From contig DF236984.1 in NCBI GenBank assembly GCA_000708835.1, positions 228,384 through 292,383 on the forward strand: a stretch of DNA of 64,000 nt. The letters are read 5' to 3'. Each line of letters begins with the position of its first letter. Position 1 is the stretch's first letter. Made by a program: the position numbers and the translations under genes. The notes beneath the pieces are model-generated. The model was not told the origin of the DNA, did no database searches, and saw nothing but the letters and a program-made list of their open reading frames with translations. This document shows, piece by piece, positions 29,815-51,660 of this stretch. The DNA is from Klebsormidium nitens. Its lineage: Eukaryota > Plantae > Klebsormidiophyceae.

Positions 29815-32800
29815 TCAAAATTCCAACGTGACGGGGGGCAGCCAGCCCACCGGATGCTGCGTCGTACTGATTCCCCCTCCGTTAAACGTGTGGTAATTCA
29901 ACACCACCAGATCTGTCGCGCCTTTCGTCTCCCCCCTGAACGTGAAAAACAAGCTGACGTTCCCCGGCCGTTGCGGCTCGCCCAGCATCCAAATCGACCG
30001 AGTGTCCGCATCGAAAACGCTCCGGGGCGGAAGGTCGTACACCGAGTTCGACGCGCGCGCGGCCCAGCCGTCTCTTCGCAGGGCCTTATCTTTATCATCG
30101 AAGACCGTAAGCTCGGAGATGGACCACGTGGCGGGCGACGTGCCGGTTTGGAGGATCTTGAGGTAGCGCGCGCTGACTGGAGTCTTTAACTTGATGTCGA
30201 CGAGGCCGGTAAACGAAGCGGAGACGTTGGCGGTCCCCGTTTGGGCGGTGGCGTATGGATACGTCGCCACCGACTGCGCATACGATATGTGGCCTTGTCA
30301 GAGGCTTGCGACCGGGCTCTTGCCAAATTTGACAGCTTTCGACGCTCACAAAGTGAGCAAAAGCGGAGAAAACTGGTCGACATTCCAGGCAATCCTCTTG
30401 GCTAGAGACTTCAAAGGTTTGAATTCTCGTTCCAAGCTTCTGGCTCGTGCCCTTGAAGCGAACCCCCGGCGCTTCAAAAAGGATTACTAAACTGCTGATG
30501 ATCAATCGAAGCAGTTGTCACCCACCCCGCGTCCTCGCAGAGTCGACGTACGATCTTCACTCTTCATTCCGCCTCAGATTTACGCAAAAATGGAAAGCAA
30601 GTGCTTTTCCGAGAACCCCAAAGGAGGAAGAAGCACGAGACTTACGAAAGCGAGCGGAACGAGGCTCGGGTTCCCCCACGTGACACCGTCCAGTGACGCG
30701 TAAAGCATGTAGCCGCGGCAGTAGTCGAAGGGCCGCCGGCCCGGATCCAGTAAGACGCGCGACACCGTCTGTGCGGCCTTCATGTCAACCTGCGGAAGTT
30801 TCAAAATCTCGGCTCGAAAGCTTTCTTTCTGGGCGGGCGTTTTGGACGGGGGATGGGTCAGTCCTCCGGCGACCAGAGAGCAGTCGAGGGTGTTGACTCC
30901 GTCGCTCGAACCAATTGGAAGATGAATCGCAAGTTTTCGTGAGAAGTCTTCAGAAGCAGGTGCACGAGTATACCCTCAGACACGTATCCTTTTTGAGGTG
31001 GCGATGAGAAGTTTCGAAGTCAAGGTGATGTGAGCACAAAATCAGTCCGAAACTATCAAAAAAGGAGGCAACCGACCTCAACAGCACGACAGGGGAAGCG
31101 GGATAAAATAGACACGCCTGATCGCTAGATTTCTCAATCTGACGCTTTTCAGCTTGGTGGCTACTCCACTTGTACTGAGCTTTTTGAATTCTGGTTCACA
31201 AGAATCAGGCTAAACGGGCGACACCGCCTGCGAAGGTTTTCATGGCCGCTTGCCGAAGCTTGCAGTTTGCGACATGCGATATTTTGAAGGCTATCCAACG
31301 GACTACAAGAGCTTTGAGAGCTCCAATGGGAAGAGAGCGAGTTCTGACCAGAAACCACTGGTTCGTGTCCTCAATGGGCGCCACGAAGTCTGTGAACTCT
31401 TGCGGCGCAGTTGGTGTGATCGGTACGGTCGCGATACGTCGGCCCTTGAGGGAGCCGATCCGCACGTCGACGTATGCGCGCTGCGAGCTGCGTAAGGATG
31501 GAAGCCAAGCTTGAGAAAACGGTGTTTTTGACCTGAACGAGTCCTACGGGAACTAGACCAGAGAAGAAAGCTTCTCACATGACAAGCGCTGTGAAAGAGC
31601 TCGCGCGTGTTCCCTTGCTTCAAGGCCACACACTTTCAGAATTTGTCAACAGTGCGGCTGGTCCCCAAAACGCACGCTGTAAGGGGGAGACTAAAGCTGA
31701 CGCGAAAGGCTTTCTCTTTCGTTTAGTCACAGAACGGGCATGCTGAGAGCATCAGCGGAGACTAAGGTGGAGACTCAAAGGTGTAAAACTGTCCGAGCTG
31801 GAATATACCTGTATGCGCGAATGCGTATGGAATCGATGTTGAACAGGTTCCAGTTGTCGTATCGTAGCCAGTCCCCGTCGGTGATATTGTACACTTCGGT
31901 TTCACCCCCGACAGGGTCAGCCGTCGGCCGCTCCAGAAGGTATGGGCTGCTCTGCAGAGGCAGAACCGCTTGAAAATCAGGAGAAAGGAACGGACGGTTC
32001 TCTTCGTGAAGGAGATTCGCCGAGTTGAACTTTCCCAGAGAAAATAAAGGCCTGCAATCCGTTCGAAAAGCTTTGGAATCCGCCGGATACCTCTTTTTAG
32101 ATGCTGAAGAACCGAAAGAGAGCTGCAAAATTGGCCTGATGAGAGGGCAGATAAGACTTTGAATGCGCAAATGCGAGAAACCTCTCGCTGTCCTCGTCAC
32201 AAAGGCAAGGCCAACTAAAACTAGTCATGGCTACTCATTGTTTGGCAGATATCTTTGGTGGCGGCATCGAGAAGAATTTGGCCACGTGCGGTGCAAAGCT
32301 CGTCTGCTAGCTAGGATGCACACGGACGCGGCAAGAGATTGGCAACCAGCCGGACTATTGAAGATGTTGTTTTGAGACCAACCTTGTCATCGTAGAACTC
32401 TGTCTGCCAGACAGATGGCATAATCTGGGACCACCCAATGCCAGTCAGCGGCGGTGCTCCGTTCAAGCCGCCGCTGCAATCAAAGTGGGTCCGAGTATAA
32501 GATCAAGAAAAGGGCGCTTAAATTTGAACGCAACCATTCAAACGCATATCTTGACCTCTGTCCTTTTTAAAGTCGTGTTCGTGTGAGGCAGGGCCGAGAA
32601 AAGAACGGGTCTGTGATGCTGAGAACGCTTCAAGCACTTTCGTGTGCGTTTTCTGGTTCTTTCTGATCCAGCAATAATGGCGATCCATCGTACACCTCAA
32701 GGGTTGTTTGTACTCGCGCAGCGTCTCAAGTCTGCGAATTCCAAACCCACCTCGGAACTTCCTTCAAGATCCAACTCAACTCAAGATCGAAGTCGGTCAA

Positions 32801-35800
32801 TCTCAAGCTCATTCATGTCCAGATCAATCCAATCTGGGTCAAAACCTGTTTCAGAGCACTCGAGACCCGTGACAATCGATCGCTAAAGAAGGATCCGAAA
32901 CGCTCACTGGTCCGGATAGATCCCTTCCACAAGGTAGTAGAATTTCTCCCAGGAGTGCTCGTCAATCAGCGGTCCAAACGTGGCTTGGCAGTCGTAGTAG
33001 GTGATGCTGTTGTGCTCGTGGCACGGGGAACTGGGCGACGGGCAGTGGCCGAGACCGGGGATCACTTGCACCGTGCTGCAAGAGATGCCGCCGTCCTCGG
33101 TGCTGCCGTCTTCGGCGTCGAAGACGGCCACCTGCGGAAAAAGGATATATGCAGGAATTTCGACAAGAAAACCTATCGACCCAGTATCCCCTGTTTGGCC
33201 ACAAATTCATGCGTGAAATCGGGTTACATGCACCGCGCGCGTGCTGCACAAATTGGGTGCGGCCATCCGTGTGCTACTGAGTTTCGCGTCGAAGAGGGCC
33301 ACCTGCGGAGGATGCTTAAGGGGTTTTGACGGTCAAGTACATTGGAAGGAGCCGTTCTCAGCCGTACCGTCCCTGGCGTTAAGAGACGGCTACCGGTAGG
33401 AAGGTCGACCTGCGGCGTATCGTGTCTTCGTAGACTTTTTCGGGCAACAGTCAAATTAACCTTTCTTTCGCAGAAGAGGAGAGAGAAACTTTTGAAATCA
33501 CAAGTTTGCGTTGCAGCTTTTCCTCAAATTGTGAAAGAACCGGTCGCCGCAACACCTGAAACTGTTTCAGTTCACCCAATGTGTTGCTGACGACGACTAG
33601 CGCGCCTGCTTCCTCGGAAAGTATTGACCGATATGGAATTGAGCTACAACGTTTCGAAGGTGGATGTACCAATACGAAGATAGGAACTGTGGATGGACGA
33701 GAGGGGGGGCGACCCATGATCGGCTTACCTTGAAGTCAACCTCGTCGCCCCACGTAAACACCCCCCCCTGCGGCGGGAAGACCACACGCACGTCCGGCGC
33801 AGTGTTCCCCTCAGATGCCACGTCGACGGGAATGGTGCACGACTTGGTGCTGGCCGCGGTGGTAATGGTCAGCGTTGCCACGTGGACGCCGGCAACGGTG
33901 TACACGTAGTGCGGGTGCGGCTCGTACGTGTCGACCGTTCCGTTGGAGTTGAAGTCCCACGCGAAAGTCATGTCGAGGCCGTCGCTGCGGAAAGGTGACG
34001 TCGAAATCGTCAGGAAAGCGTGGATTGGGTCTGAGGGAAAAAAAATTAGAGCCTCATATTGAAGCGTCCTTCAAAGTTGCGCATAACCTGAGAACAAACC
34101 TGATTTTCTGACGCACTAAATTTTGGGACGTCTGCGCGCTTGAAAAGTTTCAGGAACAAGCCTCGGAGCCTCAATCTTCACCTAGAATATGTATCTCAAA
34201 GCGATCTGATAGTTGAGCCCGAAAGCTTGACAGAGGACGAAGAGAGGTTGCGCCGCGCGTCTCAGGCTGCGCTTGTGCTCCAATCGAACCACAAGCTCGC
34301 ACACCCAATTCTTGCAAAGCATGAGCAACCAGGATCTTTGATGAATTCCGCACATCCCTGAACCAGAAGATTCAGATGCACAAAGGGGCAGAGAAAGCCT
34401 CTGTCTATTTAGATCAAAACAGCTGATACAGCGTGCTTCGCTCCGGCATCGCCCCAGCTGCAAAACTCTATCAGGCAGTACTCCTGCAGCTCCTTACACG
34501 TTGCTCAATCGCCATCAACGGGGAAGGGTCCTCGCAACCGCTCCAGATTATTTCAGTTGACGATTACCAATTCCGTAAATCCGGTTTCGCGATCGTGTTC
34601 CATCTTTTGAAACAGCGCGGAACCTCCACAAAATTCCTACACCCTGCTGGGATCAGTCGTTATCCTCTGGAAGGATCTGTGCTAAAACCTGGTGATTTGC
34701 GCGCTAAACCCGCTTAAATTTTTGCCTCATTCACTTCCTTGACGAGTTCGTGAAACCAACATCAAGCTGCCGCGGTCCGTAGACATGTTTCAAATTCTCA
34801 AAGAGGTGAAATTTAGAATATTGCTAAACCCTGCTGAATCTCTCGCTAACCCCGCTGAAACCCTCCCAAACCCACCTGGTTGACGAGCCCCAACTCGTAA
34901 ACCCGACCTCGAGCGGTCGCGGCCCCGCGAGCGGCGTTCCGTACACCTGGCAGTGGATCGGACTGGCGACGCCCATGTAGCGTAACCGGCTTAAGCGGGC
35001 GCCTTTTAGGTCGAAACCCTGGCCGAACTCAACTATGTACAGAGACCCATCGGGGGCGACCTCGATGTCCATGGGAGATAACCAGGTGAAGCTGGTGAAG
35101 GCCGGGGTGACGGAGAGGATGTTGGCGTTCTCGTCGAATTTGAGCAGCCGGATCTGGTCCCTGGACGGAAAGAGAAGATCGGGCGGGTGAGATGTACTAA
35201 AGGAAAGGGATCCACATTGCTTTGTAATTAAGCTGAAAATTTCGAGAAACCTCTACGAGAGCGGAAGTCGTGTGGAATCCAAGTAAGGTGAAACGGAGAA
35301 GAGACTAAACTGGGACCAATCGGCGTTGAACGTATCTTAAAGAACCTCCTGCGAAAGATCTCGAAAATTTCCTCAAATCCGAAGCTTTTGAACTTATCTC
35401 CAGCACCACCACTACGATCATGCATGCTGGCACTGAGGCACACAGGAAACCCTTGTTTCATTACAAATCTTGAACGATCTTGCCGCGAATCGCCCGTAAT
35501 CAACTCACATCTTAGAAATTCCACTATGGGCCTGCCCGCTTCACACAATTTCATAGTACCTCTGCGGAATGAAGTGACTATCTCCCCTGGAGAATGTCTC
35601 GACAGGATGAACTACCAAAACCTGCAACATTCGTACTTGCTTGCAAGGTGAACCGGTCTGCAACCCACCTGAACCAGTCGGCCGCGAACAGAGTGTTGTC
35701 GAAATACGGAGGCAGTCGGTAGGGCGCCCCGGGCGCGATGAACGGGTGGTCGTACCGGTAGAAGAACGGTGCGACAATGCAGCGACCGGCCGCTTTGCTG

Positions 35801-38800
35801 GGATCTGCCGCGTCGAACTGCGGCCAGTCTTTGCTGGGGCCGTAGTTGTAATACACCATGGCAGGCCGAGACGGCGGCAGTCCTGTAAGAATCAGACTCT
35901 CAAGTTTTATGAAAAGTCTTCAACATTGAAAGCGAAAACATTCGAAGCAGAACTCTCAAGAGATGGCCTCTTGAGTAGATGGGGCTCCAGAAGTCTCCGT
36001 CAGCTTTCGGTTCACATGAAGTCACTGGATGGTGAAGCTTTTCGTCTTTTCCAAAGTAAAAGGCGACAGGGAGACGTTGATCTGCCCTGTGGACCGGCCA
36101 GCTCTACGAGCCCAAGATACTTTCGCACTGCCAGTGATCCCCGCACTTTTCTGTCATTAGGAAGTGAGTAGGACTGTTTTCGTCACAACTTTCTTCCAAA
36201 ACCCTATGTGTTTCAAGCTCCTTTGCAAGGAGAAGTAGAGCTGCACATCTTCACAACAAGGGACAGCCTCGCTTAGCACCTTTCGGAAGGGCTTTCGCAA
36301 GGCTTCTCCGTTCTGACTCCCTGAAAAGAAAGCAGCAACTCACCTGTCTTGGCCCCGTTGTTGTTCGGAGATAAATTGCTCGGGTTCTCGCAGTCGAACG
36401 GCACGCCCGTACTCTGCTGCGTTGAATAGTCAAACTTCACATACGGCAGATTCGGCCCAATGCAATACGGCCAGCCGTAGTTCCCCGGTTCGTCGAATTT
36501 GAGCTGGTTGATTTCGTCCATTCCCAGGGGTCCGCGAGCGGGGTTGGGCGCGGTCTCGTCCGGGCCGACGTCGCCCCAGTATAGGTTATTGGTGTGCGGG
36601 TCGATGGAGAAGCGGAACGGATTGCGCACGCCCATCGCGTATATCTCCGGCCTGCGCAATAGCACATGTCTTCTCAGAGGAGTGCGAAAGTCTGGTTAGC
36701 GGGTTGATGGGGTGACGTCGGCCCGGACGAGATCGCGGAGGGGATTGATTTCCACGCCCATCGCGTATATTTCCGGCCTGCGAACCAACAGCTGGATAGC
36801 TTTTAAAATGAATCAAAGTTTTTCGGTGTGCGGTTTGATGCAGAAGGGGAACGGGTCGCGCGCACGCCCATCGCATATATCTCTGGCCTGCGGACCGACA
36901 GATTGCAAGCAGGAAAGTAGATATGCTTGGAATGCGGGGTTTGATGGGGAAGCGGGACGGGTTACTGCGAATGCTCATCGCGTATGACTCCGCCTTGTCG
37001 AGGGGGGAATACTTACGAGTTGAAAAGGGCCGAGATTGCACATCAAAGTTCTTTACAGTTGCCTCAGCTGAGGTGAAAAGGTCAACCGAACTTCACGAGC
37101 AAGTACTAGCGAGAGCAGAGGAGTAAGAAGGCTGGCTCGGAGTCAAATTGGCCGGTTGATTCTTCTGCACTTTTATCAACACTCCCTTTCAGGGACACCC
37201 CTTATTCGTTCTCAAAATTTACGAACCTCGCTTTCGCCCAACACGCTTGTCTCGGATTAGTTGCAAAATCGCAGTGACTCTTCTTGGAGATCGCTGCGTA
37301 CAGATCCTCTGCACTCAGCGTCCAGTTATCCGCCTAATCAGTCCTACGCAACAGCCTGAGATTTTCACAACCTGAAAAGTATCAACGACAACTCAAGGAG
37401 GACCAAACAGGAAAGATGTGCTGACCTGTGCAAGTCGTCCCCTGGAAACAGGTTGTTGGGCGGGATCTCGTAGCCGTCCTCGGTTGGCCTGATCCGGTTG
37501 ATGGCCCCTCGGAGGTCGTTCGTGTTGGCCGCAGACTTTTGCGAGTCGAGCACGTAGAACCCTGGGCGGTCGTCGGTGGGCGCCCAGCCGCTGCAAAAGA
37601 CACCGTGACATATTCAGATACAAAGTTTGATGACGTCATTCAGCGTCAGCATGACGTCATCAAAAGTGGGCATTAGCTCACGTAGAAACCCGGGCGGTCG
37701 TCGGTGGGCGCCCAGCCGCTGCAGAAAGAAAACCGGGACAACTTCAGATACGAATTGCGTTGACGTCGTCTGGTGTCAGCATGATGTCATCAAATGTCAG
37801 CAGTGGTGTACGCAGGAACGCGGGCGGTCGACGGTGGGCGCCCAGCTGCTGCAAAACAAAAAACGAGACGATAAACGATGACGTCGTTCACTAAGCAATG
37901 GTTGCACGAAAGCCCGGGCGGTCGTCGGTGGGCGTCCAGCCGGCTAACATAGAAACGGGAACGGATTTGCAAGATAGGTCCTAGATGATGACGTCACCCG
38001 GCGTAGGCAGTAGCGCACCCGAAGCCCGACGCTTATGTCCGGGGCTGCCCAGCTGAGACCGTACGCAGGCCGTCGATTTAGCAATCTTCGGGTCCGCCGT
38101 TTAAATGAGTTACCCGTTGTGAGAGCATGAGAATTTTTGAACCAGCTGTCTCGACGAAGTTGACCTCAACATGCAGCTTGGCTTCCGCTGGACTGCCAAG
38201 CCAGCCGCGATCTGAGAAATGCAAAAGTGAAGTGCCCCAAAAGAGTTCAGGCTTCCGATTCCCCCGCTCTACTACGATCCATTCCTTTGGGAAGGGGTTT
38301 TTAAGAGACAGTGTGAAGTGAGCTTACGTCTGGTAGGTGTTATCGCCCACGCTGAGCAGCAGGTTGCCGTGCGAATCGAACTTGATGTTGCCCCCGCTAT
38401 GGCAGCACGCCAGCCGCTGCGAACGAAAGGGACAAAGGCCTTTTTATAACGTAGAACAAGAAGACGAAATGTCTGGAATGTTGCGGCGGCCCTAAAAAAC
38501 GCAAGCAGGAACGCCCTCTTTTCATTACTTCGAACGCAGAATGAGGTCGTCCGTACCTCTTTCTTTTTCTTTCGGTGACTGCAGCTTGTACTGTTCGCTT
38601 TACACCACTCGCTCTATTCGTCGGGTTGCTTTCACGCTTCTTCTTTCTGCTCCATCTAGAATCCCGTGGGCTCTATCCTTTTCTTCCAGAAAGCCGGGAA
38701 GCAGTAAAAAGAACGAGAAAGGGAAGACTTTCGAGCGCACCTGTGTGTTGATCCTTAGCAGCCGCTTCTCGGACGACACGTCCACGGTGTCGCCTGTCAT

Positions 38801-41800
38801 CTTGTAACGCGAAAGTATGTTCTGAGTTGGGCTGGTCTCGTGCACGGGCGACCAGTAGACGTAGATGTACCCGTTGTTCTCGAAGTCCGGGTCGAGCCCC
38901 AACCCGAGCAAACCGTCCTCGTTGCTGTTGGTCACATTCCACCGGGCAGCTGACAAGAGTAGGTTTCAGGGTTTAGGGGTACGTTGAGAAAGTTAACTCA
39001 ACGGACAGGATCACCGAGCTTTTGGTAGATCCACATTCCACCGGGCAGCTGACAAGAGGAATCTCAGGGTTAGGGGTACATTAAGCAGATTAAGTCAACG
39101 GTCAAGGTTATGGAGCTTTTTGGAGATCTACCAACCGGCCGTGTGAGTCGCTCGCCAGACAGTAAAAGCTACTGAGCGTCAACGTACAAGATTCGAAGCC
39201 GGGATGGAATCGTGGGGCGGGCTGCTTCGAGCGCGGCGTTCTCGGGGCGAGCGGATACTTTTATGTGCGCCTACTTTTATGACGAGCGCTTACTTTTATT
39301 ATGAGCGCCGCTCCACCAAGGAACGTACCCTTTAGGTACACGAACAGACACTGTCTTTGTTCTTAAAATGGTTTCAGCCAGTCTTGAAAACTTCGTTTCT
39401 GCTGAGACGTGATGTTTCCGCCGGTAAGCGGTCTTCTGCTCGTTCTCAAGCAACGCAGCCTACAAAGGACGGAACGGCGGAAGCGGAAGGGAGGGAGCTG
39501 ACCGGTGCTTATGGTGCTTGTGGCGGGGTTGAAGATCTGGAGCTCGCCGTTTCGGACGACGATGAACACTCGGCCGTCGGGAGCGATCGCGATGGACATG
39601 GGCTGCAGAGAGGCCGGAGTATATCAGCAGATGCGGAGTACACTGTGCGAGATTGACAATCCTTCGGATAACTGTCTCTCCTTCCACATGTGTTGAGCGA
39701 GGTTGGTAGTTTTGACTGCTTCCAAGTGTCGGTTCGGACAGATCTTCTGAGAGCAATTGGAGGGAAGGACTATTCAGTCGTACTGGAGTACCCCAGATTG
39801 AGCACGGTAGGAGCATTGGAGACGAAGTGCCATGAGCTTGAGAATGATTTAGATCTCCACATGTGTGCCCAAGTTTCCCTTTCGCAACTTTTGACCATTG
39901 ATAAGGTGACCTATGAAGTGCCCAGAAAGTGGCAAGCAAGGCATTTGAATTGCGTTTTCCAAAATATCGACTGATAAATCCTTGATGAAAGTTGGTTTCG
40001 TGCTGACCACTCGATTGCCAGCCCAAAGAAGTACCGAGGGCTTAGAAATCAACGAATCCGAGATTAGACGTACAACGCAACGCCGCCATACCTGCTCCCC
40101 TTGCTGGAAGTTGTACAGCGTATCCTTCTCGTAGGCAGCGTCGTTGGTCGCCGTTCCGTCATCATCCGCCATCATTCTCCCCTCCTTTGCCAGCAGACTC
40201 CGGGCCCGCGTGTCCACTGGTAGGTGCCCGGAGGGAATCCCCGGGTGCTCCCCGCCCTGCTTCTGCCAGGCCCGGCCCGCCCAGGCGATTCCCCCAACCA
40301 CATGTTTGATCATCAGCGGGTCTGCCCAGAGGTCGGGGTTGTGGCCCAGGGAGGTGTAGAAGGAGCGTGAACCAAAAGGCCTGCAGCCAATGGCTGGAAC
40401 GTTTGGAATGACTTCAGAAATTGGGGCTTAGGCCTCTGGCAAAGTTCAGTGTCGACAGAAAGAGTTCCCTGCTCTATTCTTTTAAGCGCCTTGCCACATG
40501 GATCATGCAGCTTTGCGGCTCGACAACCTGCTAGATGTGGGAACCAACGTCCTCAGACTTGACAGTTGAAGCTGGTATAGGACAGCTAAAAGGAGAAAGG
40601 TTCAGAGAAGAGACCTGAGGGATCATCACAGCTGCAAGGCTGCTCCAGCTTCCAATGGTCACAAGTCTGAAGGTCCTGTCGCCAGATATCTTCTAACTGA
40701 AGGTCCAGCAGCCGACTCTTAAAAAGCAAGCATGGCCAGCTTACATGGTCACTTGCATTAACAACCAGGCTAATGCTCAGAAGTTGGATCAACATCAATC
40801 ATCAGAATGATCAGCCACAGCGCTTACGATTACGCTATTCTGATAAGAGTCAGCTATATAGACTGGGGGCCCTGCTCACCTGTGTGTCCAAGCGATAGGC
40901 TGGTCAAATTGTGCTGCCCCAATGTTGTAACCAGGCATGTCGGCTGAGCGCTGGAGGAGCGCCAGAGTGTGCACTCCGGGGGTCAGGTCAAAAGCTAGCC
41001 AGTGCTCAGAGACGTTCCAGCGCTCTGGTAGCACCGTAGACGCAGGGTGAAATCTGCAGATCGAAGATAGAAGACACCATTTCTTGTCAGATGTTATATG
41101 TTAAGGGCAGGGATATAGCAGCTTTGAGTGCATTGTATTGAACCAAATCGCTCCAGACTAGCTAAATGCACCTTAGGATCATGAGACTTCACTAAATGCT
41201 GAAACAAGCTGGCTGCATAGAGTCTGCAGTGCCACCGTGTTCTGATATGTACCTAGTAGAAAGGTTGTGTCAGCAGAGAGCAGTTTCAGATTCTGTCACG
41301 AATGATGCTCAACTGCTCATCCTCCAGGTTAACTTTTCAAGTTGCAACAGCGCACTAATTGACCTCAAAAGAGGATACCAGAACGATCCGTTGTAGGCAC
41401 CTTTCATCCAGGTTGTGCGGCAAAAACAAATCTTCAAAACGTTGGATCAGAGGTCCAGTAAGAGCTGGAGAATTAGACAGCAGATCTAGGTGGAATAGTC
41501 TACGAGGCTGATCTGAGTGGTATAGCAGCTCATTGTAATACAAGTACCTGGTGCTCAACTAACTGGAAGCTAGCTAAACTGCACCACCACCACCACCACC
41601 ACCACTTTTATGAAACTACATTGTCTGAAACTGGACCTGACATTATTGAAGTAGTGGACGTCATCGTGCCAGCTGCAAGGCAGTATGTAAAGAAGCATTT
41701 CACTTATTGTGCCTCGCAGCCATGGATTCTGAAATCAATGCGGGTGCCATTTCAACCAAGTCCTCAATGACACACAAGCCAGAGGCACTGCCCCTTTGAC

Positions 41801-42287
41801 CAGATTACTTCACGAACTTGACCACCTACCTGTCATGCACGAGTACAGTCCCTCCTGTGAGCTGACTTCCATTCCTCCCAGCTGCAGGTCTCCCTCCTAT
41901 CAGAGTATCAAACCAATCCCAGCCGATCATTGTCTCTGCCGCCGAATGCACGCCAACAAAGCTGCCGCCGCCCTGGATGTAGTTTGCAATAGCATTCCGC
42001 TGATCTTTGCTGCTAAGGACGTTTCCACTTGTTAGCAGAAAGACGATGGTGTCATAGGCTGTCAAACCCGTTGGACTGAGCCCTGTGCTGGTTTCCAGGT
42101 GGTCAACCATCCAGCCCTGCTCGAAGCCAGCTCTTTGCAGAGCTTCAACAGCTGGGGGAATCGATTCATGCTGCTCTTCAGCTTGACCTGTGAAGAGGAG
42201 TACTCGAAGGGGAGCTGCACCAATGCATGTGGTGCAGAATAGCATCCCTAAAAGGACAATGCAAGACAAATGGCTGGGCGCCTTCAT
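29815..42287 (-). CDS. Secreted multidomain protein of about 1248 aa: signal peptide, ThuA-like, PQQ-dependent sugar dehydrogenase (GSDH beta-propeller), PKD, CBM6-like, F5/8 type C (discoidin). Exons 42287-41830, 41053-40880, 40380-40092, 39602-39503, 38949-38741, 38416-38328, 37590-37426, 36651-36344, 35882-35669, 35160-34876, 33984-33729, 33131-32908, 32473-32383, 31951-31809, 31487-31349, 30789-30646, 30273-29815
   Basis: All 16 introns are GT-AG and the phases sum to 3747 nt with no internal stop. Motifs: RVLLFT...GGGSFVGVHSA...RSFYTSLGH (ThuA); PMSIAIAPDGRVF, EDGLLGLGLDPDFENNGYIY, CCHSGGNIKFD...GD, SAANTNDLRG, EIYAMGVRNPFR, GNYGWPYC, PMDIEVAPDGSLY (GSDH); FAWDFNSNGTVD (PKD); ITDGDWLRY...IDSI (CBM6-like); QWFLVDMKAAQTVSRV...SLDGVTW and ARYLKI...WSISEL (F5/8C). 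The extreme C-terminus is less certain. Confidence 0.9.
33121..33420 (-). repeat. Degenerate duplicates of the exon-12 acceptor and exon start in the upstream intron
   Basis: CGTCGAAGACGGCCACCTGCGGA (exon start) recurs as CGTCGAAGAGGGCCACCTGCGGA near 33287-33309, and partially (GACCTGCGGCG) near 33407. Confidence 0.7.
36640..37000 (-). repeat. Three degenerate copies (about 105-110 bp spacing) of the exon-8 acceptor junction
   Basis: CACGCCCATCGCGTATATCTCCGGCCTGCG (36628-36656) recurs at about 36753-36782 and 36863-36892, and decayed at about 36970-36996. Confidence 0.8.
37553..37995 (-). repeat. Tandem array (about 95-130 bp units) of exon-7 start, acceptor and TGACGTCA-rich intron
   Basis: GGGCGGTCGTCGGTGGGCGCCCAGCCGCTGCA occurs at about 37564 (real exon), 37692, 37822 and 37917, with progressive decay away from the exon. 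Confidence 0.85.
38933..39130 (-). repeat. Duplication (about 98 bp) of the exon-5 acceptor junction
   Basis: CACATTCCACCGGGCAGCTGACAAGAG is identical at about 38933 and 39032, and the following intron sequence is also repeated. Confidence 0.85.
41582..41605. repeat. (CAC)n microsatellite in GSDH intron 1; paralogous tract at about 23577-23601
   Basis: Directly visible in both duplication units. Confidence 0.8.
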
Positions 42288-44286
42288 CCCTGCTCGGTGA
42301 CTGGCAGCCATCTTGCCAGCCTTCAAGCGTCCGCTGACGATCGCTTCGTCATGCACGAAGACGTGCTTGTCCCACCCAACATCGTCTGAAGCCCGAGGCT
42401 CGAGCTCCCTGGGCCTAAGCCTTCGATCGTTTCCACTGTGGCGCCTTTTGATCACTTGCCTAAATCATATCAGGGCAGATGTATTCGAACTGCTCAAGCT
42501 GCGTCTCTAACGTGTACTCGTGTTGATCAACAGTCTTTGGTAGGCGCTACAAATGTGATGTGCGCGAAAATGACCGGGTACGGTACGTTTCGGTACGGTA
42601 CGGTACCTATAGCAACATAGTACCGGTACAATGCTGGGAGTCTGTGCCTGGGGCCCTCGGGCTGGGTGTAGGGCCGCGGACATTCTTCTATCTACCGGTA
42701 CATGATCGGTCGCTCGGGTTACTAAGAGTCGGGTACCAACCAGTACCAAGGTCCCAACGTACTCTTTGCTGGACAGTACCAACTTCACAAAGCATGCCAG
42801 GATACCGGTAGGTAGCCTGGATAGGTACGCGATTGTGCACTGCGCACTGCGCAATTGTTTGCAACACTTGCGCAAAGTCCGAAGTCAGACGAAAGCCAGC
42901 GTGTCATTGGAAATTGAAGTCTGACCCTCGGTTTTCTTCTGCAACTTATCGAGCGGCTAGGAATGAAGCAAATGCCTTGAGATTCAGGAGAATTCAGTGA
43001 CAACTGTGTATCAAATGACGTCAAAAGAGCGTCATGGTCCAGATTTGCCACAGAATGACGAGCGCGTTGCAGGGCCGTTGACTGTGTGGACAGCACATGC
43101 AGCCACACAGGCCGCGAGACACCCACAGGCGACCGTGCTATTCGAAGTTGGGCCATCCGAGGTCGCCGTCTCTTCAGTCCACGTTCTGTGATGTTTGCTT
43201 TAACACGATCGGAAACTTTCAACCTGTGAACGATGAATGGCGGCATTGGGGAAATGCAGGCTGCAGGATGGCGTGACAAGGGCGTCGCCTTCGAAGTGGT
43301 TGCTTCTGATTCTGTGTCCTGCGAAGGTTGCCCCTTCGGCAAACTGACAAATATCCGTTCGGAATCCCCACTGCTCATGCTTGACTGGTCATGCTGGACA
43401 GGCCCACAAGAAGAAGAAAGTGATACAATGGTGTGAGAAGGACGAGCAGCGGTAGATCCGTCTGAAAAGCTTGGCGCCGCAGGAAGGAACTGGTAAGCAG
43501 TGCCTTGAAAGTTTTGAGGCGAAGTAACTTCACAAACTTATACTCCCTGATGCAACTGGCCAGTCAGCCAAAAGGCTGCATTTGCGATCTGCATAGGTTT
43601 GAAACAAAGAGCTCAGTACACCTTTGACTATCTTCATGAGAACACCACAACTGACAGATATTGACGGTATCATTGACTGAGGGTATCTGTCAAGTAGTCA
43701 GTTCAGAAGTGCTAGTTATATCAGTAGAAGCTGAGAGCCGTGCCCCATTGCAATTTGATCCTGTGGAGACAGCCAGAGTGAAATTGTTAAAGAGAAGGAG
43801 TGGTCGAAAGTAGGAGAAATCTGATTCTTACGCTGCGACCTTGACATTCCTACTTTGTCTCTTTGGAGTTTAGCTCAGGATGACAAGTTGGCATTTGGAG
43901 TGTCCCTTTCCCTGAGCTCAATTAGCCTTTGGACTCACATCAAACAAAGCCCCTCAAAGGCTGGCTTGCTTGGTATAGAAGGATTCACTACCTGTCGCCC
44001 GGGTTCGTGAGGCAGTGCCCCAGATGAAGATTGTCGATCTGCTTTCATTGGCGCATGTTTCTCTGGTCTTTGACTGTTTCGCAAACCAAATGGTGTGCAG
44101 ACTGGAAAAACGTTCGTATCTTTGAATAAGCCTTCAACAGTGTGAAGGCGGCAGAAAAAGTAGACAACTGGCCGTGCTCTGATCAAGGGCTTCTTCTGCA
44201 GGCTAAGTCAGCCAGCAGGTACTAAGGGGAAGTTTAGGCATGACATGGGAACTGAGAAGGAGACAGTCGCAAGAAGGCGGCACAGA

Positions 44287-47200
44287 ATGAAGACAAACAC
44301 CTGGGTTTGCTCAGCTTTGGGGCTGCTGCTCGCAACCCTCAGTCTTCTATGTCTTTTGACCACTCAGGTTCGTTTCTCTCTGACACTGCTGAAGGACTTA
44401 ATATGAATGAGGTGACAGTAATAATCGAATCACACAAAGCTCATGATGGATACAGCAGCTGCATGAATCGACCTCCATGACTGATTATCGTTTTCGGCGA
44501 AGGTCATGGATAGGCCCAAAACATCATCTTCCTCTTTCAAGTGCTCTCTCCAATCAAAAGCTCTGCCTCCGATTGTGGCTAGATGTGTTGCTTCAATATA
44601 CGCCGACAACGGATGCCTCCAGCTGCAAAGCTGAGCGTGATGCTGCAAAATACCATTACACCCTCTGAGTGCAGGTGACTGGAGCAGAGTTGACACATGA
44701 GCAGCTGTTCAAGTTTGCTCCATTGCCCGATGGGGCGCTCCCCGATGAGCACGTTTACACACCAGGCGTCCGAGAATGTGAGTGCAAAGAATCGAATCCG
44801 ATTGAGCCACACTGTCTGCTAGGCAGAAGGTATCACTTTCAAGCTGGCTTGAAACTGGTAATTGACGTCCTGGTCAAAACCCTGAACGACTTGGAGGGGG
44901 TTACATGGTACCTAGTGATTGATACTAGGGTCGTATCATCTTTCTCCAGGAAAAAATATAGCTCAAGGCATGCTAAAACAGGGGTCTAATGCTGTCCTGT
45001 GCAGGCATCTTCCAGATCATCCGGAAGAACTTACTGACCATGTCCCTCAAAGATGAGCGCATCAATGCCAAGTTCTTGCGGCTGATATTCCACGACTGCG
45101 GTAAGCGCGATTTTATCTGGTGAGCATTTAATTGATTCCAATGAAATCGTTGTGAATGGGTTCTGGAATGTGTCCTATCAATCAATTCCGGTGAAGGACC
45201 TGCAAATCTTTTGTAGAGTTTTCAGCTCCCCTGATCTGGTTGCCTGTTAACTCTGCCAACCTTTCCAACGAAAAGATACCCGTTTAGGGACGGATTACCA
45301 GAGTCTGTGTGGTCCACAGCTTATGTATAAGTTTGCATAATCCTCATCAATAAGCAACAGCTTATGTACCCAGATCTGTCTGGCCAAACGGGCGCTTATG
45401 CATAATTGACTTATCGCTGATATGCGCAGCTGCTGGCGGCTGCAACGGGTCCATCATGCGGACAGAGGAGCACAATGGAACGGCAAACGAGTTTCTTACT
45501 GTAAGTTGTCGTCCTCTTTTTCTTTCGACTGTTTGGTGCTGTTCAGCTTTCGAAAACATGTGGACACGATCTTGCCATTACTTCTGAATGCAGAGCACTT
45601 TGACAACCCTTTTTTATTGTTGGAAAGGTATGTGTATGTGACTTTCCAAAAGGTTGACGTTTCAGGAGAGCGAAGCTGCCTGACTGAGTATGATCCACTT
45701 CGAATGCCTCAAACAACAATGAAACGACCTTCTGACGTGCAATTTTCGAATCCGCAGGGGTTTGACGAGGTCCGTATGGTCAAAGCTGCAATTGATACCT
45801 CGTGCAACGTCAGCATCTCGGTGAGGCTTCCTTTACAAAGCTATGTTGCCACTGATCATTCTTGTATCGAGGATCAAGGTTACCCTCGATCGCTTTTGTC
45901 AATACACTTTGTCTACGGCTTGACAAGATTTTTGCATACTATCAACATCGCTCACGCTAGTTCTGGATCTCTGGCAACGGGGTTGTCTTTGGAATTATCT
46001 CTGAGCAGCAAGCTCAAGCTCTCATCCAAAGTGTGCGTCCCTTGCAGCTTGCTGATACGATCATTGCTGGGGGAGTGGAAGGAGTGAAGGAGACGGGTGG
46101 CCCTGACATCACGGCCTACGTCAGGTTCGGCAGGCGGGATACAGACGACCGAGACGATCCCAACAAAGTGAGAAGTCCTGGAATTTCCGTCAGCATCGCA
46201 GCACTTTTCAGGCAGATGTTTAAAGGGTTCTACTCGGGTTGGAATACTGCTCTGTTTTGGGTCGATCCGGCGATAAAAGATTATGTGCTTGGGCCGAATC
46301 ATGGCTGTAAGGATGCTGACTTTCTTCACCCTCTCTGCAGCTGCCGCTTCCGTTCGTCTCGACGGACGAGCTGGTCAGAGTTTTCGCTCCTCTCGGTAAG
46401 CCACGCTTGTCTTCAAGCCGACTCAACCAGTTTGGCGTTACTTCTTCCCGTTCAATGCATTAGCGAGCTTCCGTTTCTCACTGTAACGCTGGGCCACCAG
46501 ACTGAGGGCAATCAGATGTTAGCAATCACAAGCAACGGAGGCTGTCGCATGCTGTCGGAGGCTGCCGGAGTCGAGTTAGTTGATATGACAATTGAGGGTC
46601 TTCTTAGCTGGTGGCTCGTAAAACTTCTTTCAGTTGAACAGCTTTCGACTATAGATGGTTCAGGAGCTCGAAACGAACTATGAGAAGCTTTCCGAATCTA
46701 CCGAGGAACAAAGCGCTGGTCGAGAACCTGCAGACGCCTGAGAATATTGAAAGTCCTACTGCTTTGTGTCCTAAAAAGCTCTCCTTTGCTACTTGAATCA
46801 AGCTCCCTCAAACCCTGTGAGAGACTTGAGAGGTGAAGTACGCGCTGTCAGTGCAGGGCTCAACGTGGAGGACCTTGTGGCGCTTTCTGGGGCCCATACC
46901 ATCGGCAAAGCCACGTGCAAGAACATCGTCGCCAGGTAGGGCAGCGTCACCGGCGCCCAATCAAATACCATTTGTCTTTGAGAACACTAACATGCTGCGA
47001 CGGTGTCGACACGTCACTTGATTGCGAGGTGTTTCGGAGACTGCCGGAGGGAACGATTGGGAGATCCGTATGACATCTTGCGGATCCATTATCGTTCTCC
47101 AATTAAGCAACACAAGAACCTGCTGATCTGCCCTGTCTTTGTCAATGGTTGCAGCATATATCAATGAAGGCACCATTATATGAAAGACCATAGACCTCTT

Positions 47201-50200
47201 CTACTGAAGGAAGTGAAGAGGAAAATGGTTCGAGACTTTCTTTCTCTCAAGGGTGTCTTCCTGGAACTTATGCAGGCTGGGAACCGATCCAACAGCCGAC
47301 CCCGCTTTCCTGTTCAGCCTTCTGCCTAGATGCACAGCCCTGGCCACGCAGCAGCTCGATCTGGACGCCAAAACCCCTGAGGTCTTCGACAAGTACTACT
47401 TCCAGGTGAGACATGCGAATCTGCTCGAATGGACGCTCGGACCGATGGCACTGGAAGGTTGTAGAGCATGCAGTGTGAGGTCGTCTCTTCGACTTCTCCA
47501 TCCGCTCTTTGAAATATTCTGGCGTCCCTCTCTTCTGTTCTCCGCGACTTTGCTCACGCTGTTCGTTCTCTTGCCGCGCAGGGCCTGAAGGAAAAGAAGG
47601 CGATGTTGCAGACCGATCAAGAGCTCTACGAGAGCGAGGCAACGCATCCGTACGTCTTGGAGTGAGTCTTCTTCTGCCAATCACTTTTTTGTACGATGCG
47701 AGGATGTCCTCCAATCTTGGGTAGCAGAAACATTCCCCGTCTGCATCACAGGATGCGAAATTGTTTGCTGGCTCTTTGTCAGGGCCTTTACTGAAGACTA
47801 CACCTGTTTGCAGTCCTAAGAAGGTTTTGCCTTGAATGAAGGTACAACCTGCGTGACCTTCTCTAGACCTTCTTTGGATCCGCTCACAGGGGGCTGCAGC
47901 GGAGTGACGCAAGCCCTCCTTAGTATTCTCGTGGTTTGGTCTGTTCTTGAGCATATTTGAGGATCCTCGTCGCCAATTTGTGGTGCAGATACGTGGCCAA
48001 CCAAACAATGTTCTTTCGGCGGTTCCAGGCCAGCCTCCTCAGGCTTAGCATGGTCGGGATCATGCCCGATCGCTTGTCGCCTCCGATCGAGCATCGTGAC
48101 GACATCAACTTCACCGGTAAGCAATGGCAGCGTTCCTATGTCATTGCGTCAGACCAGTGATGCATTCTTGTTTAGCAAGACGCGTTATCGGGCAGGATCA
48201 CCATCCAGGTATTCAGCTTACCTGGTTTTCCTTTCAGCTTCACATTAACCGGAAGCCAGCTCAATCGGCACTAACCACAAAGGAGTGCATACATTTTCTT
48301 CACTTCACGCGGTGTATTCGATGTCCTTGGGGCTCAACCTCTCGCGTGCATTTCTCAAATCGGCCTCTCTTGTATGCCAAGCACTTGAGTTGACTGGCCT
48401 TTCTCGGCTCCTTTCTATCTGCAGTTCCAATCGAGGCATCCTTCACCCTCTTCCGGCCGTCAGCGCTCGTTCGCAACAACATCTACACGTTGCAGGCGGA
48501 GCTCAACCAGCAGTTGGCCACACCCAACACCTCGGTAAGCTTCTTTAACCGCAGAATCCTGGTTACACGTTCAAAGGCTTCTATCACGCTGGGAAGCCCG
48601 CAAGCTTTTGCAGACCGGCTACAGCCTGCCAGGGTCAACTTGCCGATTAGTGACGCGTCAACAAACTTTGGCCCAGGTATAAAACATGGCCGCAGCAACC
48701 AAAACGTTCTGTACCCTAGTCTCACTCAATTCCAACAAAAGCGAGGTCATGCAACCGACAGGAAGGGCCTCAGGGTTTTTTCACCGTTTGATAATATGCG
48801 CGCACTTTTCAGCTTTTGTAGTAACATTTCTTCACGAACGAGATTCCGTCAACCGCAGGCTGTCGTCACGTCTGTCCTGGACGACGTCTCCGTTCCGGGC
48901 CAGTCGGTGGTTCGCTTCTGGATCGTTCCGCTTCCGCTGTACCACAAGCGGAGCGGCATCCCGTACGACGAGCTGATAACCGTTCTTGCTGGACTCAACC
49001 AGACCGCAGTCGACCCAAGCAAGCTTCAGCTAGACGACACCTTTTTTGGTCCGCCGCAGAACTTCCAGGTGAGACTCGAGAACTTTGGAGTCTGTGATCA
49101 AAACGCATCGAGAGGGTTGGAGCCTAGAGCTGGCCACACCTTCAAATGAAGAAATCTGTATGTAGCCTTACGGTCAGACCAGGCACACTTCCCGTCCAGA
49201 TGTCCAGAATTTGTAAGTACGACGAAAGATACCGAGCCAGATTGTTCCAGTGGTTCCGCCACGTCAATCTGTTTGAGATGAGACACGGAAGTTCGTTTTC
49301 GACTCCTCTGACGACAGAAAATCCGTGTGCCGCTTTGTTGCAAGCCTGATGGTAAGCTTTACAGTTGGCCTTGTGCAACTGTCCCTCGCACTCGAAGCCA
49401 GTTTTCCCAGCTTACGCGTCCCTTTTTCGCCTCTCGGAACGCATTGCCATGTCACCAATCACCGGTGCGGATACTGCAAAATGCTCAAAACGTCCGTTCG
49501 TGCCGAATTCTTCTTCAATTTTCCTTTCAGGTCGTCTCTTTCCCGATCAACACCACTTTCCCAGTTTCCTCGGGAGGTCCTGACGTGAGCGCCTACGTCA
49601 CGGAGCCCCTCGACTTCGCAAACTTCACCCTGCAAAGGAGGCCCGCCTCACAGCGGGATCTCTTCGCTTCCCAAATAAGCGCCGCGCTCCGCGTGCGGCC
49701 GAGCGAATCTTTATCAGTCTCCCTCCAAAGCCCGTCTGAAGTTCAGACGGTTGTAACGCTGTCCGTCAGGCAGACTGGCAGCGTCGATTTTGTAGCAGCG
49801 AGAGTAGCGGAGTTGCAAAGCGCAGCCGCAGCGGCTCTAGATCGGGGCCTTCTTTTCAGCCCCGCCATTTTCGGTTTTGCGGAAGGCAGTCAAGCGGCTC
49901 GCGACGCGGAGCAACCGCCGACCGTGGCACCGGGACCAATTGCTAGCATTGCTAGCATTGCTAGCCCCTCTCAGGCTAGCAATGCCACATCAGCCGAGGG
50001 AGACGACACGTCAGCGGAGGAAGAGGACACGTCAGCGCTGCGTGACGTGGCGTCCGAGAAGCACTCGGGGGTCAAGGAAGTCAACTTTACGTTTGGTATC
50101 ATGGCTGTTCTCGTGGGGCTGGGTGGCGCGGCCGCGTTTGTGCTCCACTGGCGCGCGACGCGGGCGGCCGCGCAGAAGAAGCAACCGGAGGAGTCCGGCG

Positions 50201-50220
50201 AAGGCGAGCAAGGCAAGTAG
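44287..50220 (+). CDS. Class III-like heme peroxidase fused to DUF7036-like repeats and a C-terminal transmembrane helix (type I membrane protein). Exons 44287-44367, 44675-44777, 45005-45100, 45430-45500, 45758-45820, 46048-46167, 46341-46395, 46857-46935, 47276-47405, 47582-47661, 47989-48116, 48425-48534, 48859-49068, 49531-50220
   Basis: Signal peptide MKTNTWVCSALGLLLATLSLLCLLTTQ; distal motif FLRLIFHDC; GGCNGSI; GGPD...GRRD; proximal motif DLVALSGAHTIGKATC; DLDAKTPEVFDKYYF; MLQTDQEL. These are followed by IEASFTLFRPSALV...LQLDDTFFGPPQNFQVVSFP and the TM segment FGIMAVLVGLGGAAAFVLHW. All exon phases are consistent. Confidence 0.88.
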
Positions 50221-51660
50221 AGCTTTCGGACGTTTGCGTTGAAAAGATTTCAGAAGCTCTGCATGGGAATTTCGAAGTGACATACTGTCAAAGTCAGCCC
50301 GTTTCCTCTGTTCACGGTAATCTGATCAGCCAGGTCTCACTAAAGTCCAGGATCCGCTCGCTTTCCTTTGCAGTGTGAAACCATTGTCTGCACGTTTCCT
50401 GGGTACGGGTCCCTCGAAGTGTCAAGCTGCCACGTACAAAAGACTTACAGCTTGCATCCCCTCTTTTTACTGCAGAGCCGCTGCGGAGAGAAATGGATGA
50501 CTTGTCAAAAACCAGGTCGACTTAGGGGCTCGTTATACTCAAGCACGCTGGTCATAGAAGGACGCTCGTACGGTCCCATTCAGTCAAGTGCAACTCGACT
50601 GCCTCGACGTTACACATTTGGATTAATAGAGCATTGCGGAACGCCGCGGATCAGATTGCAGTTCAATTTTCAGATCGAGCGTGATTACGAGATGCCACGA
50701 TAATCAGACAGCTACTCAGGACATTCCTGTGATGTATTCTACAGTAGACAGTCTTCTGACGGAAATAGACGGCGCTTACTTCGGCAGTCTGGTACGCATC
50801 CAAGCCAGCCTGAGTCGAACGTTTCGGAGACTGAGAACTTTCATTTGGAAAGAGCTCATTGTAAGCAAGTGTCAAACTTAAGCCTGCATCAGCCTTTGAT
50901 TTGGACATCAGCACACATATGCTGCCCGGAAGCTACTGGTTACTTCTCAGTATTCATGATCATTTTGAAAGGAGAACATCATCATGACTATGAGAATTCA
51001 ACAATCTGGTTAATTCTATGCCGGCTTTAGAATCGATCGAGATTTGCGTGCGCAGAGTTAGATAGACTGCATGCATGACCCAATTATCAAATTCAAACGT
51101 GGTCAGATTTCAATACAATCACTGCCACGTACTGAGCCTTTGAGGCGATACAATAAATTCCATAATTCTGGGGGGCATCAGCTCAACGGTCTGTTCATAC
51201 TTATCATTCCGCCTATCACCGGAGGCCGCGGGCCGCTTCTTCTCATGGGTGATCAATTGGCATGGTCTTCCAAATGTTGCTGAACTTCGCATTTGGTCTT
51301 CACATATAGTATCTATTTTGGCGGCGGCACTGCGAGACCGGTAACGGATAGAGAAAGCAAGTATTTTTAATTGCGTGTTTCTTTGCATTGGCAGATCCCA
51401 TCAGTACAAAGTAAAGCCATTTCAATGTGTATGGCCGGCCGTTGCGGAGCCGCTAAGGCTCGATCGAGCGGCTCTTAGTGCGGATTCGATAAGAAGTTGA
51501 CATATTAACCTCCCTACAGTGCGCAATCAACGGTCGAAACTTGGGGTCGATCACCAGCTTTACTTCTCGACGACAAGGCTCGATTGACACCCACTTAACA
51601 AAGTACCTAAAATCTGCTAGCGTCACGTTGATTCTCAATCATGTCGTCCTGTTGTAGGCC

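Follow-up and report, generated by a model that had tools for sequence, protein, structure and literature searches.

A gene of 15 exons in Klebsormidium nitens encodes a protein of 685 residues in which a hydrophobic signal or anchor segment, a class III-type peroxidase, two domains of ~110 residues, a linker, a transmembrane helix, and a tail follow one another from the N to the C terminus. The gene is expressed and evolutionarily maintained, and the reading of the whole that we consider probable is a type I membrane-tethered apoplastic class III-type peroxidase. Class III peroxidases are usually regarded as single-domain soluble enzymes, and the predicted protein would be a natural model, from a streptophyte alga, of a membrane-tethered apoplastic peroxidase near the time of the plants' move onto land. 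A literature search found no publication describing an architecture of peroxidase, two domains, linker, and transmembrane helix.

The coding span occupies positions 44287–50525 on the forward strand of the window, the stretch of 64,000 nucleotides that was analyzed. Its exons (44287–44367, 44675–44777, 45005–45100, 45430–45500, 45758–45820, 46048–46167, 46341–46395, 46857–46935, 47276–47405, 47582–47661, 47989–48116, 48425–48534, 48859–49068, 49531–50212, and 50476–50525) are defined by joints in transcript contigs from four runs, by GT or GC..AG intron ends, and by the open frame of the joined exons, the translation of which contains the sequence stretches quoted in an earlier note on this DNA. 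The transcript evidence consists of Logan contigs from four runs (X1, X5, X9, and X15) belonging to four studies; it should be noted that these are assemblies of short reads and not single molecules. That the runs are RNA is a guess, although contigs without introns can hardly be anything else; in the stretch compared, 13 introns, all with GT..AG ends, are absent from contigs of these runs. One contig (X9 record 19, 2388 nt) extends from exon 1 to 433 nt beyond position 50212 and includes nearly the whole coding sequence. An in-frame ATG upstream, at 44245, could extend the N terminus by 14 codons (44245–44286); there is an in-frame stop at 44161, and an X15 contig contains 214 nt 5' of position 44250. 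The end of the gene had been placed at 50220, but the stop there is unused, since all four runs pass from 50212 to sequence at 50476. The intervening intron (50213–50475) has GC..AG ends and is conserved, with equivalents in two related genomes, L001 and L002, and the stop codon is a TAG at 50523–50525.

The last peroxidase exon is joined in phase to the C-terminal module at 48116|48425 by removal of a 308-nt, phase 1 intron with GT..AG ends (48117–48424), the joint at 48115/48424 in the contigs having been shifted by +1. Spliced contigs reach depths of 990, 297, 52, and 8 at this joint in the four runs and are about 100 times deeper than unspliced contigs; X5 record 14, for example, spans 47989–48115, 48424–48533, and 48858–49065. 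The spliced joint in four runs and the 685-residue open frame bear out the proposal of the earlier note that the peroxidase exons run on in phase into the C-terminal part, and the view that this is one gene with one mRNA is strengthened by preservation of the junction phase in the two related genomes. Both contain all the exons in the same order, with the phase 1 GT..AG junction at the same codon, and their proteins have amino acid identities of about 88% (L001) and 65% (L002). Termination after exon 47989–48116, a possibility that had been raised previously, is removed by the in-phase spliced mRNA together with the conserved junction in two genomes. At dS values of up to 0.9–2.1, the dN/dS ratio is about 0.05 in the peroxidase exons and 0.21–0.30 in the C-terminal module; judged from these comparisons, the C-terminal module is under purifying selection.

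The class III-type haem peroxidase domain (residues 28–335, exons 2–11; 44675–48116) was recognized from matches to Pfam PF00141 and to sequences in the PDB. When exon pieces were scanned with PF00141, the exon 8 piece scored best (35.9 bits versus a cut-off of 27), and four others match collinear positions below the cut-off because the pieces are short. The best PDB sequence matches of three exon pieces are class III plant peroxidases, in collinear stretches (residues 16–44 and about 151–181 of HRP C1A and 198–237 of barley BP1), whereas APX and CcP match the proximal-His piece only, with E-values about 1000 times weaker; by sequence, the domain appears to stand nearer class III than class I (APX, CcP). 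The catalytic motifs R-L-I-F-H-D-C, with the distal Arg and His, and G-A-H-T-I-G, with the proximal His, are intact, as are F-D-K-Y-Y-F and L-Q-T-D-Q-E-L. The domain retains the distal Arg, Phe, and His, the proximal His, the S/T-D-Q Asp, and the motif of the proximal Ca site. In G-A-H-T-I-G-K-A-T-C a class III-specific Cys lies at +7 from the proximal His, and another follows H-D. The mature domain has six Cys (residues 62, 93, 98, 133, 217, and 242), corresponding to C1–C4, C6, and C7; Cys5 and Cys8 are absent, leaving it short of the eight Cys and four disulfides conserved in class III, and the Asp50 equivalent of the distal Ca-site is Asn. Among moss PRXs accepted into class III, some have lost this same Cys5-Cys8 pair (10.1101/2024.01.25.577222), and Cys pairs are missing from fewer than 5% of the sequences in the class (10.1101/851881). 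The protein also departs from the single-domain soluble form of ~300–350 residues that is usual in the class, having 685 residues, two more domains, and a transmembrane helix. Ten of its 11 N-X-S/T sequons lie N-terminal of that helix and the eleventh (residue 627) abuts the helix start.

Domain 1 (residues 336–442, exons 12 and 13; 48425–49068, split by an intron at 48535–48858) resembles Pfam DUF7036 at its start: the first 37 residues match positions 1–37 of the 93 in PF23041 with 19.4 bits and an E-value of 0.0017 (cut-off 27), and the orthologous pieces score 15.9 and 13.6 bits. The PF23041 gathering score of 27 bits was reached by none of the pieces scanned, of which that from exon 12 was best, and exon 13 and domain 2, as separate pieces, had no Pfam match at E up to 10. 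Domain 2 (residues 443–567; 49531–49905) was characterized from AlphaFold models and ESM Atlas neighbors. Two models cover it, with low to middling pLDDT values of 50 and 63 from alignments of three sequences, and the predicted fold is ferredoxin-like (beta-alpha-beta-beta-alpha). Their best ESM Atlas neighbors are two different clusters, each 100% PF23041 and from land plants; the superposition has a TM-score of 0.37 over 101 of 227 residues for one model, and of 0.66 over 96 of 111 residues (rmsd 3.1; next-best neighbor 0.56) for the other. Fold matches of domain 2 in the PDB are generic ferredoxin-like only, with Z at most 6.7. The earlier note had described a second similar repeat, but the two domains show no similarity in sequence (hhalign gives P 0.27, and the Smith-Waterman score is 32, with shuffles averaging 29). 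Its DUF7036 assignment survives in a weaker form: the sub-threshold sequence match in domain 1 and the predicted fold of domain 2 weakly suggest such a likeness, but the gathering score was not attained.

The linker (58 residues; 49906–50079) is Ser/Ala-rich, as had been noted, with 11 Ala, 10 Ser, 7 Glu, and 5 Pro, and contains AP, SP, and PP dipeptides and an acidic run; its length differs between orthologues, which retain an S-P-S motif. Hydropathy analysis of the 685 residues identifies two hydrophobic segments only, residues 4–31 and 626–650. The latter contains the core of the transmembrane helix (residues 628–649; 50086–50151; Kyte-Doolittle up to 2.15), which is conserved in L001 and L002. 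A tail of 35 residues, basic and then acidic, follows (50155–50525, split by the intron at 50213–50475, where contigs of the four runs have loose ends at 50212 that are found again at 50476), and the single C-terminal helix with a short charged tail previously described is thus seen in hydropathy and translation. The tail is probably cytoplasmic, since the basic residues after the helix would put it in the cytosol, and the peroxidase would therefore face the lumen or apoplast. The N-terminal segment, encoded by exon 1 (44287–44367; up to 2.29 in a 19-residue Kyte-Doolittle window) and conserved in L002, may be a signal peptide or, if it stays uncleaved, a signal anchor; its hydrophobic stretch is long (about 19–20 residues) and might persist as a second anchor.

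These features suggest a type I membrane glycoprotein that would enter the secretory pathway by means of its N-terminal segment and whose ectodomain would begin with a class III-type haem peroxidase competent for catalysis. The two small alpha/beta DUF7036-like domains and the linker, Ser/Ala/Pro-rich, acidic, and probably O-glycosylated, would space the peroxidase from the membrane, in which the single helix would anchor it ahead of the cytosolic tail. Because it is fused to these domains and a membrane anchor, an enzyme normally released to the cell wall is probably kept at the membrane, where, at the interface with the wall, it could catalyze the H2O2-driven oxidation of phenolic or protein substrates, either secreted or part of the wall, instead of diffusing away. 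In canonical enzymes, the Cys5-Cys8 disulfide ties down the C terminus; its loss may have accompanied the gain of the C-terminal extension, which would tie the missing bridge to a freed C terminus.

It is exceedingly improbable that two adjacent genes, one for a secreted peroxidase and one for a DUF7036-like membrane protein, have been joined by an assembly artefact or rare read-through splicing. Low-depth unspliced contigs do extend over the fusion intron (in X1, a single listed contig, record 4, with a depth of 9), and retention of the intron brings a stop into frame at 48158–48160, ending the peroxidase 18 codons on (2 codons in L001 and L002) in a product that would be a peroxidase without the anchor. 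However, the spliced joint is dominant in all four runs (990 versus 9 in X1), is canonical and in phase, and is conserved as the same phase 1 junction at dS of about 1–2, and a separate downstream gene would be without an evident start, since no in-frame ATG occurs in exon 12 beyond a stop at 48391–48393. Very unlikely, too, is a non-catalytic role in which the peroxidase domain would be a binding module, or pseudo-enzyme, on a receptor-like membrane protein: the missing Cys5-Cys8 disulfide and the Asn in place of Asp50 would fit it, as would the very low activity of an algal class III enzyme without Cys2/Cys3 (10.1101/851881), but the catalytic and proximal Ca-site residues are retained, the low dN/dS of the peroxidase exons argues for constraint, and the accepted moss enzymes likewise lack the disulfide.

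The site of anchoring and its permanence can be weighed similarly. For the tethered peroxidase, we infer a plasma-membrane location, whereas anchoring in an endomembrane (ER, Golgi, or vacuole/tonoplast), where the peroxidase would act on the lumenal side, seems unlikely but merits consideration, given that land-plant class III peroxidases are also vacuolar or tonoplast-associated (PMC6213016) and that the sequence holds no proof of surface delivery. Against this, the AP/SP-rich linker and many sequons would resemble those of a wall-facing glycoprotein, and the tail, with K-T-R-S-T at its end, shows no ER retrieval motif of the C-terminal KKxx type. It is rather doubtful that the anchor is temporary, a regulated cut in the linker or a SEA-like domain setting the ectodomain free as soluble peroxidase. 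Language-model features that put the C-terminal part near SEA-domain and collectrin clusters (0.76–0.82, short of the lead level of 0.9), the occurrence of SEA domains (2e7v, TMPRSS6) and MAD12 among the fold matches (Z 5.7–6.0), and a G-S-V tripeptide conserved in domain 2 are in its favor. Autoproteolytic cleavage of SEA domains occurs in a G/SVVV-type turn between strands 2 and 3, but in the domain 2 models G-S-V is at the border of strand 3 and helix 2; moreover, the SEA structures (Z 5.7–5.9) are level with dozens of unrelated ferredoxin-like folds and Pfam SEA (PF01390) has no match at E up to 10. These results do not support reading domain 2 as a SEA domain.

The predicted membrane-tethered peroxidase shares its catalytic domain with canonical class III enzymes (horseradish peroxidase C1A, Arabidopsis A2 (1pa2), and barley BP1 (1bgp)), including the motifs R-x-x-F-H-D-C, G-A-H-T-I-G-x-x-x-C, F-D-x-x-Y-(Y/F), and S/T-D-Q, N-glycosylation sequons, and a putative N-terminal secretory segment. 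It differs in its length (685 versus about 300–350 residues, with about 350 extra at the C terminus), in the absence of Cys5 and Cys8, and in having 10 introns rather than 3 in the peroxidase part. Introns between Cys2 and Cys3 and, in phase 1, shortly before the proximal His occupy the family's conserved places (10.1101/2024.01.25.577222), but the former is in phase 1 as compared with phase 0 in canonical genes. By what means some class III peroxidases are retained at membranes is still debated (PMC6213016). The angiosperm membrane-bound enzymes (ZmPrx01/66/70 and OsPrx95) are membrane-held with the active site outside, and for OsPrx95 the PSORT prediction was a type I protein whose transmembrane helix lies at the C terminus; these are, however, single-domain proteins without stalk domains, thought to be anchored mostly via an uncleaved N-terminal signal peptide (PMC6213016). 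The Klebsormidium anchor, unlike theirs, forms a module of its own at the C terminus, about 290 residues past the peroxidase domain.

The predicted architecture is like that of animal thyroid peroxidase, in which a signal peptide precedes an ectodomain with the haem peroxidase and small stalk domains, followed by one transmembrane helix and a short cytosolic tail; the enzyme is kept where H2O2 arises, at the surface of the membrane. Thyroid peroxidase belongs to the peroxidase-cyclooxygenase superfamily and has CCP and EGF stalk domains, unlike the Klebsormidium protein, and the likeness would be convergent. Other members of the Klebsormidium protein's own superfamily also have a C-terminal anchor, but these are tail-anchored proteins that face the cytosol or stroma and have no signal peptide, disulfides, or stalk domains.

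The land-plant DUF7036 proteins, in ESM Atlas clusters of 475 and 587 residues from Streptophyta, resemble the C-terminal module in that the start of domain 1 is like the Pfam model and the domain 2 models superpose best on their clusters; by Pfam listing, the clusters have PF23041 alone, without a peroxidase family. Read as a Rosetta stone, Klebsormidium would hold both partners in one polypeptide, and the land-plant DUF7036 membrane proteins would be free-standing counterparts of its stalk-and-anchor module, scaffolds that dock secreted class III peroxidases at particular sites of the plasma membrane. This reading is a long shot; it nevertheless gives a testable hypothesis for an uncharacterized land-plant family, as peroxidase-associated cell-surface scaffolds. 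The automatic name of the clusters is "hydroxyproline-rich glycoprotein family protein," and the AP and SP dipeptides of the Klebsormidium linker are like those of Hyp-glycoproteins.

Frame-by-frame translation of positions 44200-50300 gives peroxidase-like pieces over many short exons, followed by longer frames that end in hydrophobic sequence. When the Logan contigs of four public runs, from four studies and under two organism labels (the RNA run type is a guess), were aligned to positions 44250-50240, 13 segments were found to be absent from the main contigs, each beginning with GT and ending with AG; these contigs therefore come from spliced RNA. The joint 48116/48425, which removes a 308-nt intron between the peroxidase exons and the C-terminal module, is seen in all four runs at a depth equal to that of the adjoining exons (990, 297, 52, and 8), and one unspliced contig is listed across the intron in run X1 (depth 9). 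Record 14 of run X5, a short-read assembly, connects exons 11, 12, and 13 over 47989-49065. Record 19 of run X9 (2388 nt) starts 25 nt inside exon 1 and ends 433 nt past 50212, and record 8 of run X15 starts with 214 nt that lie 5' of 44250, outside the aligned stretch, and then continues past exon 11 to reach exon 12.

In every run the contigs also pass from 50212 to sequence located at 50476, which defines an intron at 50213-50475 with GC..AG ends. Because this intron is removed, the stop at 50220, which the earlier note had taken for the end of the gene, is spliced out. The 15 joined exons read through 685 open codons to a stop at 50523-50525. The in-phase continuation from 48116 to 48425 is thus borne out by the spliced joint in every run and by the open frame, but the proposed gene end is refuted. 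The donor of the terminal intron is GC (AAG/GCAAGT) in the window and in L001, one of two contigs carrying an orthologous gene (about 5198-5440), and GT in the other, L002 (from 10475); the intron excises an in-frame stop that a reading from sequence only would call the end of the gene. Contigs of low depth (about 1-5% of exon depth) are unspliced at 45071-45458, 46367-46885, 47632-48018, 48087-48453, and 49042-49557, and could be pre-mRNA, intron retention, or DNA traces; retention of 48117-48424 would give a peroxidase without the anchor.

Five exon pieces of the peroxidase domain (residues 28-335) match Pfam PF00141 at collinear profile positions, and the exon with the proximal His exceeds the gathering score (35.9 bits). 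In PDB sequence searches with three exon pieces, the top matches are class III plant peroxidases (anionic peroxidase 4a5g, Arabidopsis A2 1pa2, barley BP1, and HRP C1A), again collinear, whereas ascorbate and cytochrome c peroxidases are matched much more weakly and by the proximal-His piece only. The spliced sequence contains R-L-I-F-H-D-C, G-C-N-G-S, G-A-H-T-I-G-K-A-T-C, D-A-K-T-P-E-V-F-D-K-Y-Y-F, and L-Q-T-D-Q-E-L, which correspond in HRP to the distal Arg38/Phe41/His42, the distal calcium site (here Asn replaces Asp50), the proximal residue His170, the proximal calcium site, and Asp247. Two of the eight canonical cysteines, the Cys5/Cys8 pair, are absent and the other six are kept; in canonical class III enzymes the Cys5/Cys8 bridge ties the C terminus to the core. 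Four moss peroxidases likewise have no Cys5/Cys8 pair (10.1101/2024.01.25.577222), and the absence of cysteine pairs is seen in fewer than 5% of class III sequences (10.1101/851881). Comparison of four peroxidase exons with those of the two relatives gives a dN/dS of about 0.05. We infer that the domain is an active class III-type enzyme. A phase-1 intron (45101-45429) lies between Cys2 and Cys3 and another (46396-46856, also phase 1) lies 14 codons ahead of the proximal His, at the sites described for the conserved class III "001" introns 1 and 3, although the first differs in phase; the domain has seven further introns.

The peroxidase domain is preceded by a hydrophobic segment (residues 1-27) and followed by domain 1 (residues 336-442, exons 12 and 13), domain 2 (residues 443-567), a linker (residues 568-625) in which Ala, Ser, Glu, and Pro abound and which contains AP, SP, and PP dipeptides and an acidic run, a hydrophobic helix (residues 628-649), and a tail (residues 651-685) with a basic start and an acidic end. 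Only the N-terminal segment and the C-terminal helix exceed a Kyte-Doolittle value of 1.6 (19-residue window), and the presence of 35 hydrophilic residues after the helix argues for a transmembrane helix as opposed to a GPI signal; the membrane anchor with a short charged tail suggested previously is supported. Ten of the 11 N-X-S/T sequons are N-terminal of this helix and the eleventh (residue 627) sits right at its beginning. No cysteine occurs in the C-terminal module. An upstream in-frame ATG at 44245 could extend the N terminus by 14 mostly charged residues (44245-44286), and such an extension ahead of the hydrophobic segment would lend a little more weight to a signal anchor that stays uncleaved.

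The most likely mode of action is, from the topology onward, inferred. The N-terminal segment would bring the protein into the secretory pathway, and the glycosylated product would have the type I membrane orientation, or be anchored at both of its ends; the peroxidase would then be the outermost part and the short tail would be in the cytosol. A folded stalk of about 220 residues and the 58-residue linker would set the peroxidase apart from the bilayer. Beside the membrane, the enzyme would use H2O2 and substrates that are secreted or belong to the wall. Its site would lie near that at which the NADPH oxidases of land plants generate the oxidant, a point discussed for the plasma membrane peroxidases of maize (PMC6213016). 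The protein may instead reside in endomembranes rather than at the cell surface, the ectodomain may be shed, and the stalk domains may have a binding role.

Membrane ascorbate peroxidases have a C-terminal anchor, but they belong to class I and face the cytosol or the stroma, and the nearest analogue in design, the thyroid peroxidase of animals, belongs to another superfamily. The membrane-bound class III peroxidases of angiosperms each consist of one domain, and their anchor is believed to be an N-terminal signal that is not cleaved; a C-terminal helix is predicted for OsPrx95 only (PMC6213016); in contrast, the Klebsormidium gene encodes extra domains and a C-terminal anchor. A multidomain class III enzyme is not mentioned in the algal and moss peroxidase surveys or the other peroxidase papers searched (PMC6213016, 10.1101/851881, and 10.1101/2024.01.25.577222 among them), and the name DUF7036 was not found in the literature searched, with most subscription journals and RedoxiBase outside it.

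The exon 12 piece of domain 1 matches positions 1-37 of 93 of Pfam DUF7036 (E 0.0017) with 19.4 bits, below the cut-off of 27, and the orthologous domain 1 exons score 15.9 and 13.6 bits; exon 13 alone gives no match and domain 2 has no Pfam match. The AlphaFold model of the last exon (three-sequence alignment) has a pLDDT of only 50, and that of domain 2 by itself has a pLDDT of only 63 and a pTM of 0.56; both have a beta-alpha-beta-beta-alpha order. In the ESM Atlas each model has as its top row a cluster from streptophytes whose members all (100%) have PF23041: a 475-residue "hydroxyproline-rich glycoprotein family protein" cluster for the last exon (TM 0.37 over 101 of 227 residues) and a 587-residue cluster for domain 2 (TM 0.66 over 96 of 111 residues). 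The second-best match is the ferredoxin-like domain of MscS channels (TM 0.56), and searches of PDB folds did not go beyond generic matches of the ferredoxin-like kind (Foldseek E ≥ 0.02, VIA Z ≤ 6.7). The resemblance to DUF7036 put forward in the earlier note is therefore weakly supported, by the sub-threshold start of domain 1 and the predicted-fold neighbors of domain 2, but no Pfam score reaches the cut-off; "DUF7036-like" is a reasonable label and carries no claim of membership. Domains 1 and 2 have no detectable mutual similarity, contrary to the "second similar repeat" that had been described. Membership in the SEA family, raised by language-model features, was rejected: no Pfam SEA match was found at E up to 10, and the SEA and SEA-like juxtamembrane domains among the PDB fold matches are level with many unrelated folds.

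When 1.84 billion representatives were searched exhaustively (HMMER) with the last exon, the only real relatives were P0001 and P0002, ORF fragments that represent the last exon in L001 and L002. Word-index searches scored on exon 13, 12, or 6, each within a longer stop-free frame, which required a length window and a 5-mer match, found one L001 ORF and recovered no land-plant DUF7036 or peroxidase sequences; two metagenome scans gave zero further relatives, and cluster look-ups yielded no names. The restriction to Klebsormidium-like genomes means only that these searches detected nothing else, eukaryotic transcriptomes being poorly covered in protein collections. P0004, an FN3 protein, was treated as a compositional or chance match. 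P0003 (3952 residues) carries a tandem array of 14 repeats, each about 86 residues long (residues 2724-3903; 3-6 bits each, jointly E 8e-10), that weakly resemble the strand-strand-helix part of domain 2; it was set aside as probably a compositional or chance match or a shared small fold.

In tblastn searches with the gene model, L002 (a 39-kb JGI metagenome contig) has every exon from peroxidase to anchor with the order kept, and L001 (a 40-kb Logan contig) has all but exons 1 and 10, the match in L001 ending at the contig edge and exon 10 giving none. In both, the fusion junction has a phase-1 GT donor and an AG acceptor at the same codon as in the window, even though the final residues of the peroxidase are not the same and an indel is present there in L002; read-through past the donor meets a stop two codons on in either relative. 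Conservation extends to the terminal intron and the tail motif. The C-terminal module has a dN/dS of 0.21-0.30, with dS of 0.4 (L001) and 0.9 (L002), and dS in the peroxidase exons is up to 2.1. Selection thus keeps the fusion in no fewer than three related genomes. L002 also carries a ThuA-domain ORF (448-957, minus strand), which lies upstream of the peroxidase orthologue at a distance of about 2.5 kb; it matches the ThuA/PQQ-dehydrogenase gene of the window (29815-42287), and the neighborhood is therefore syntenic.
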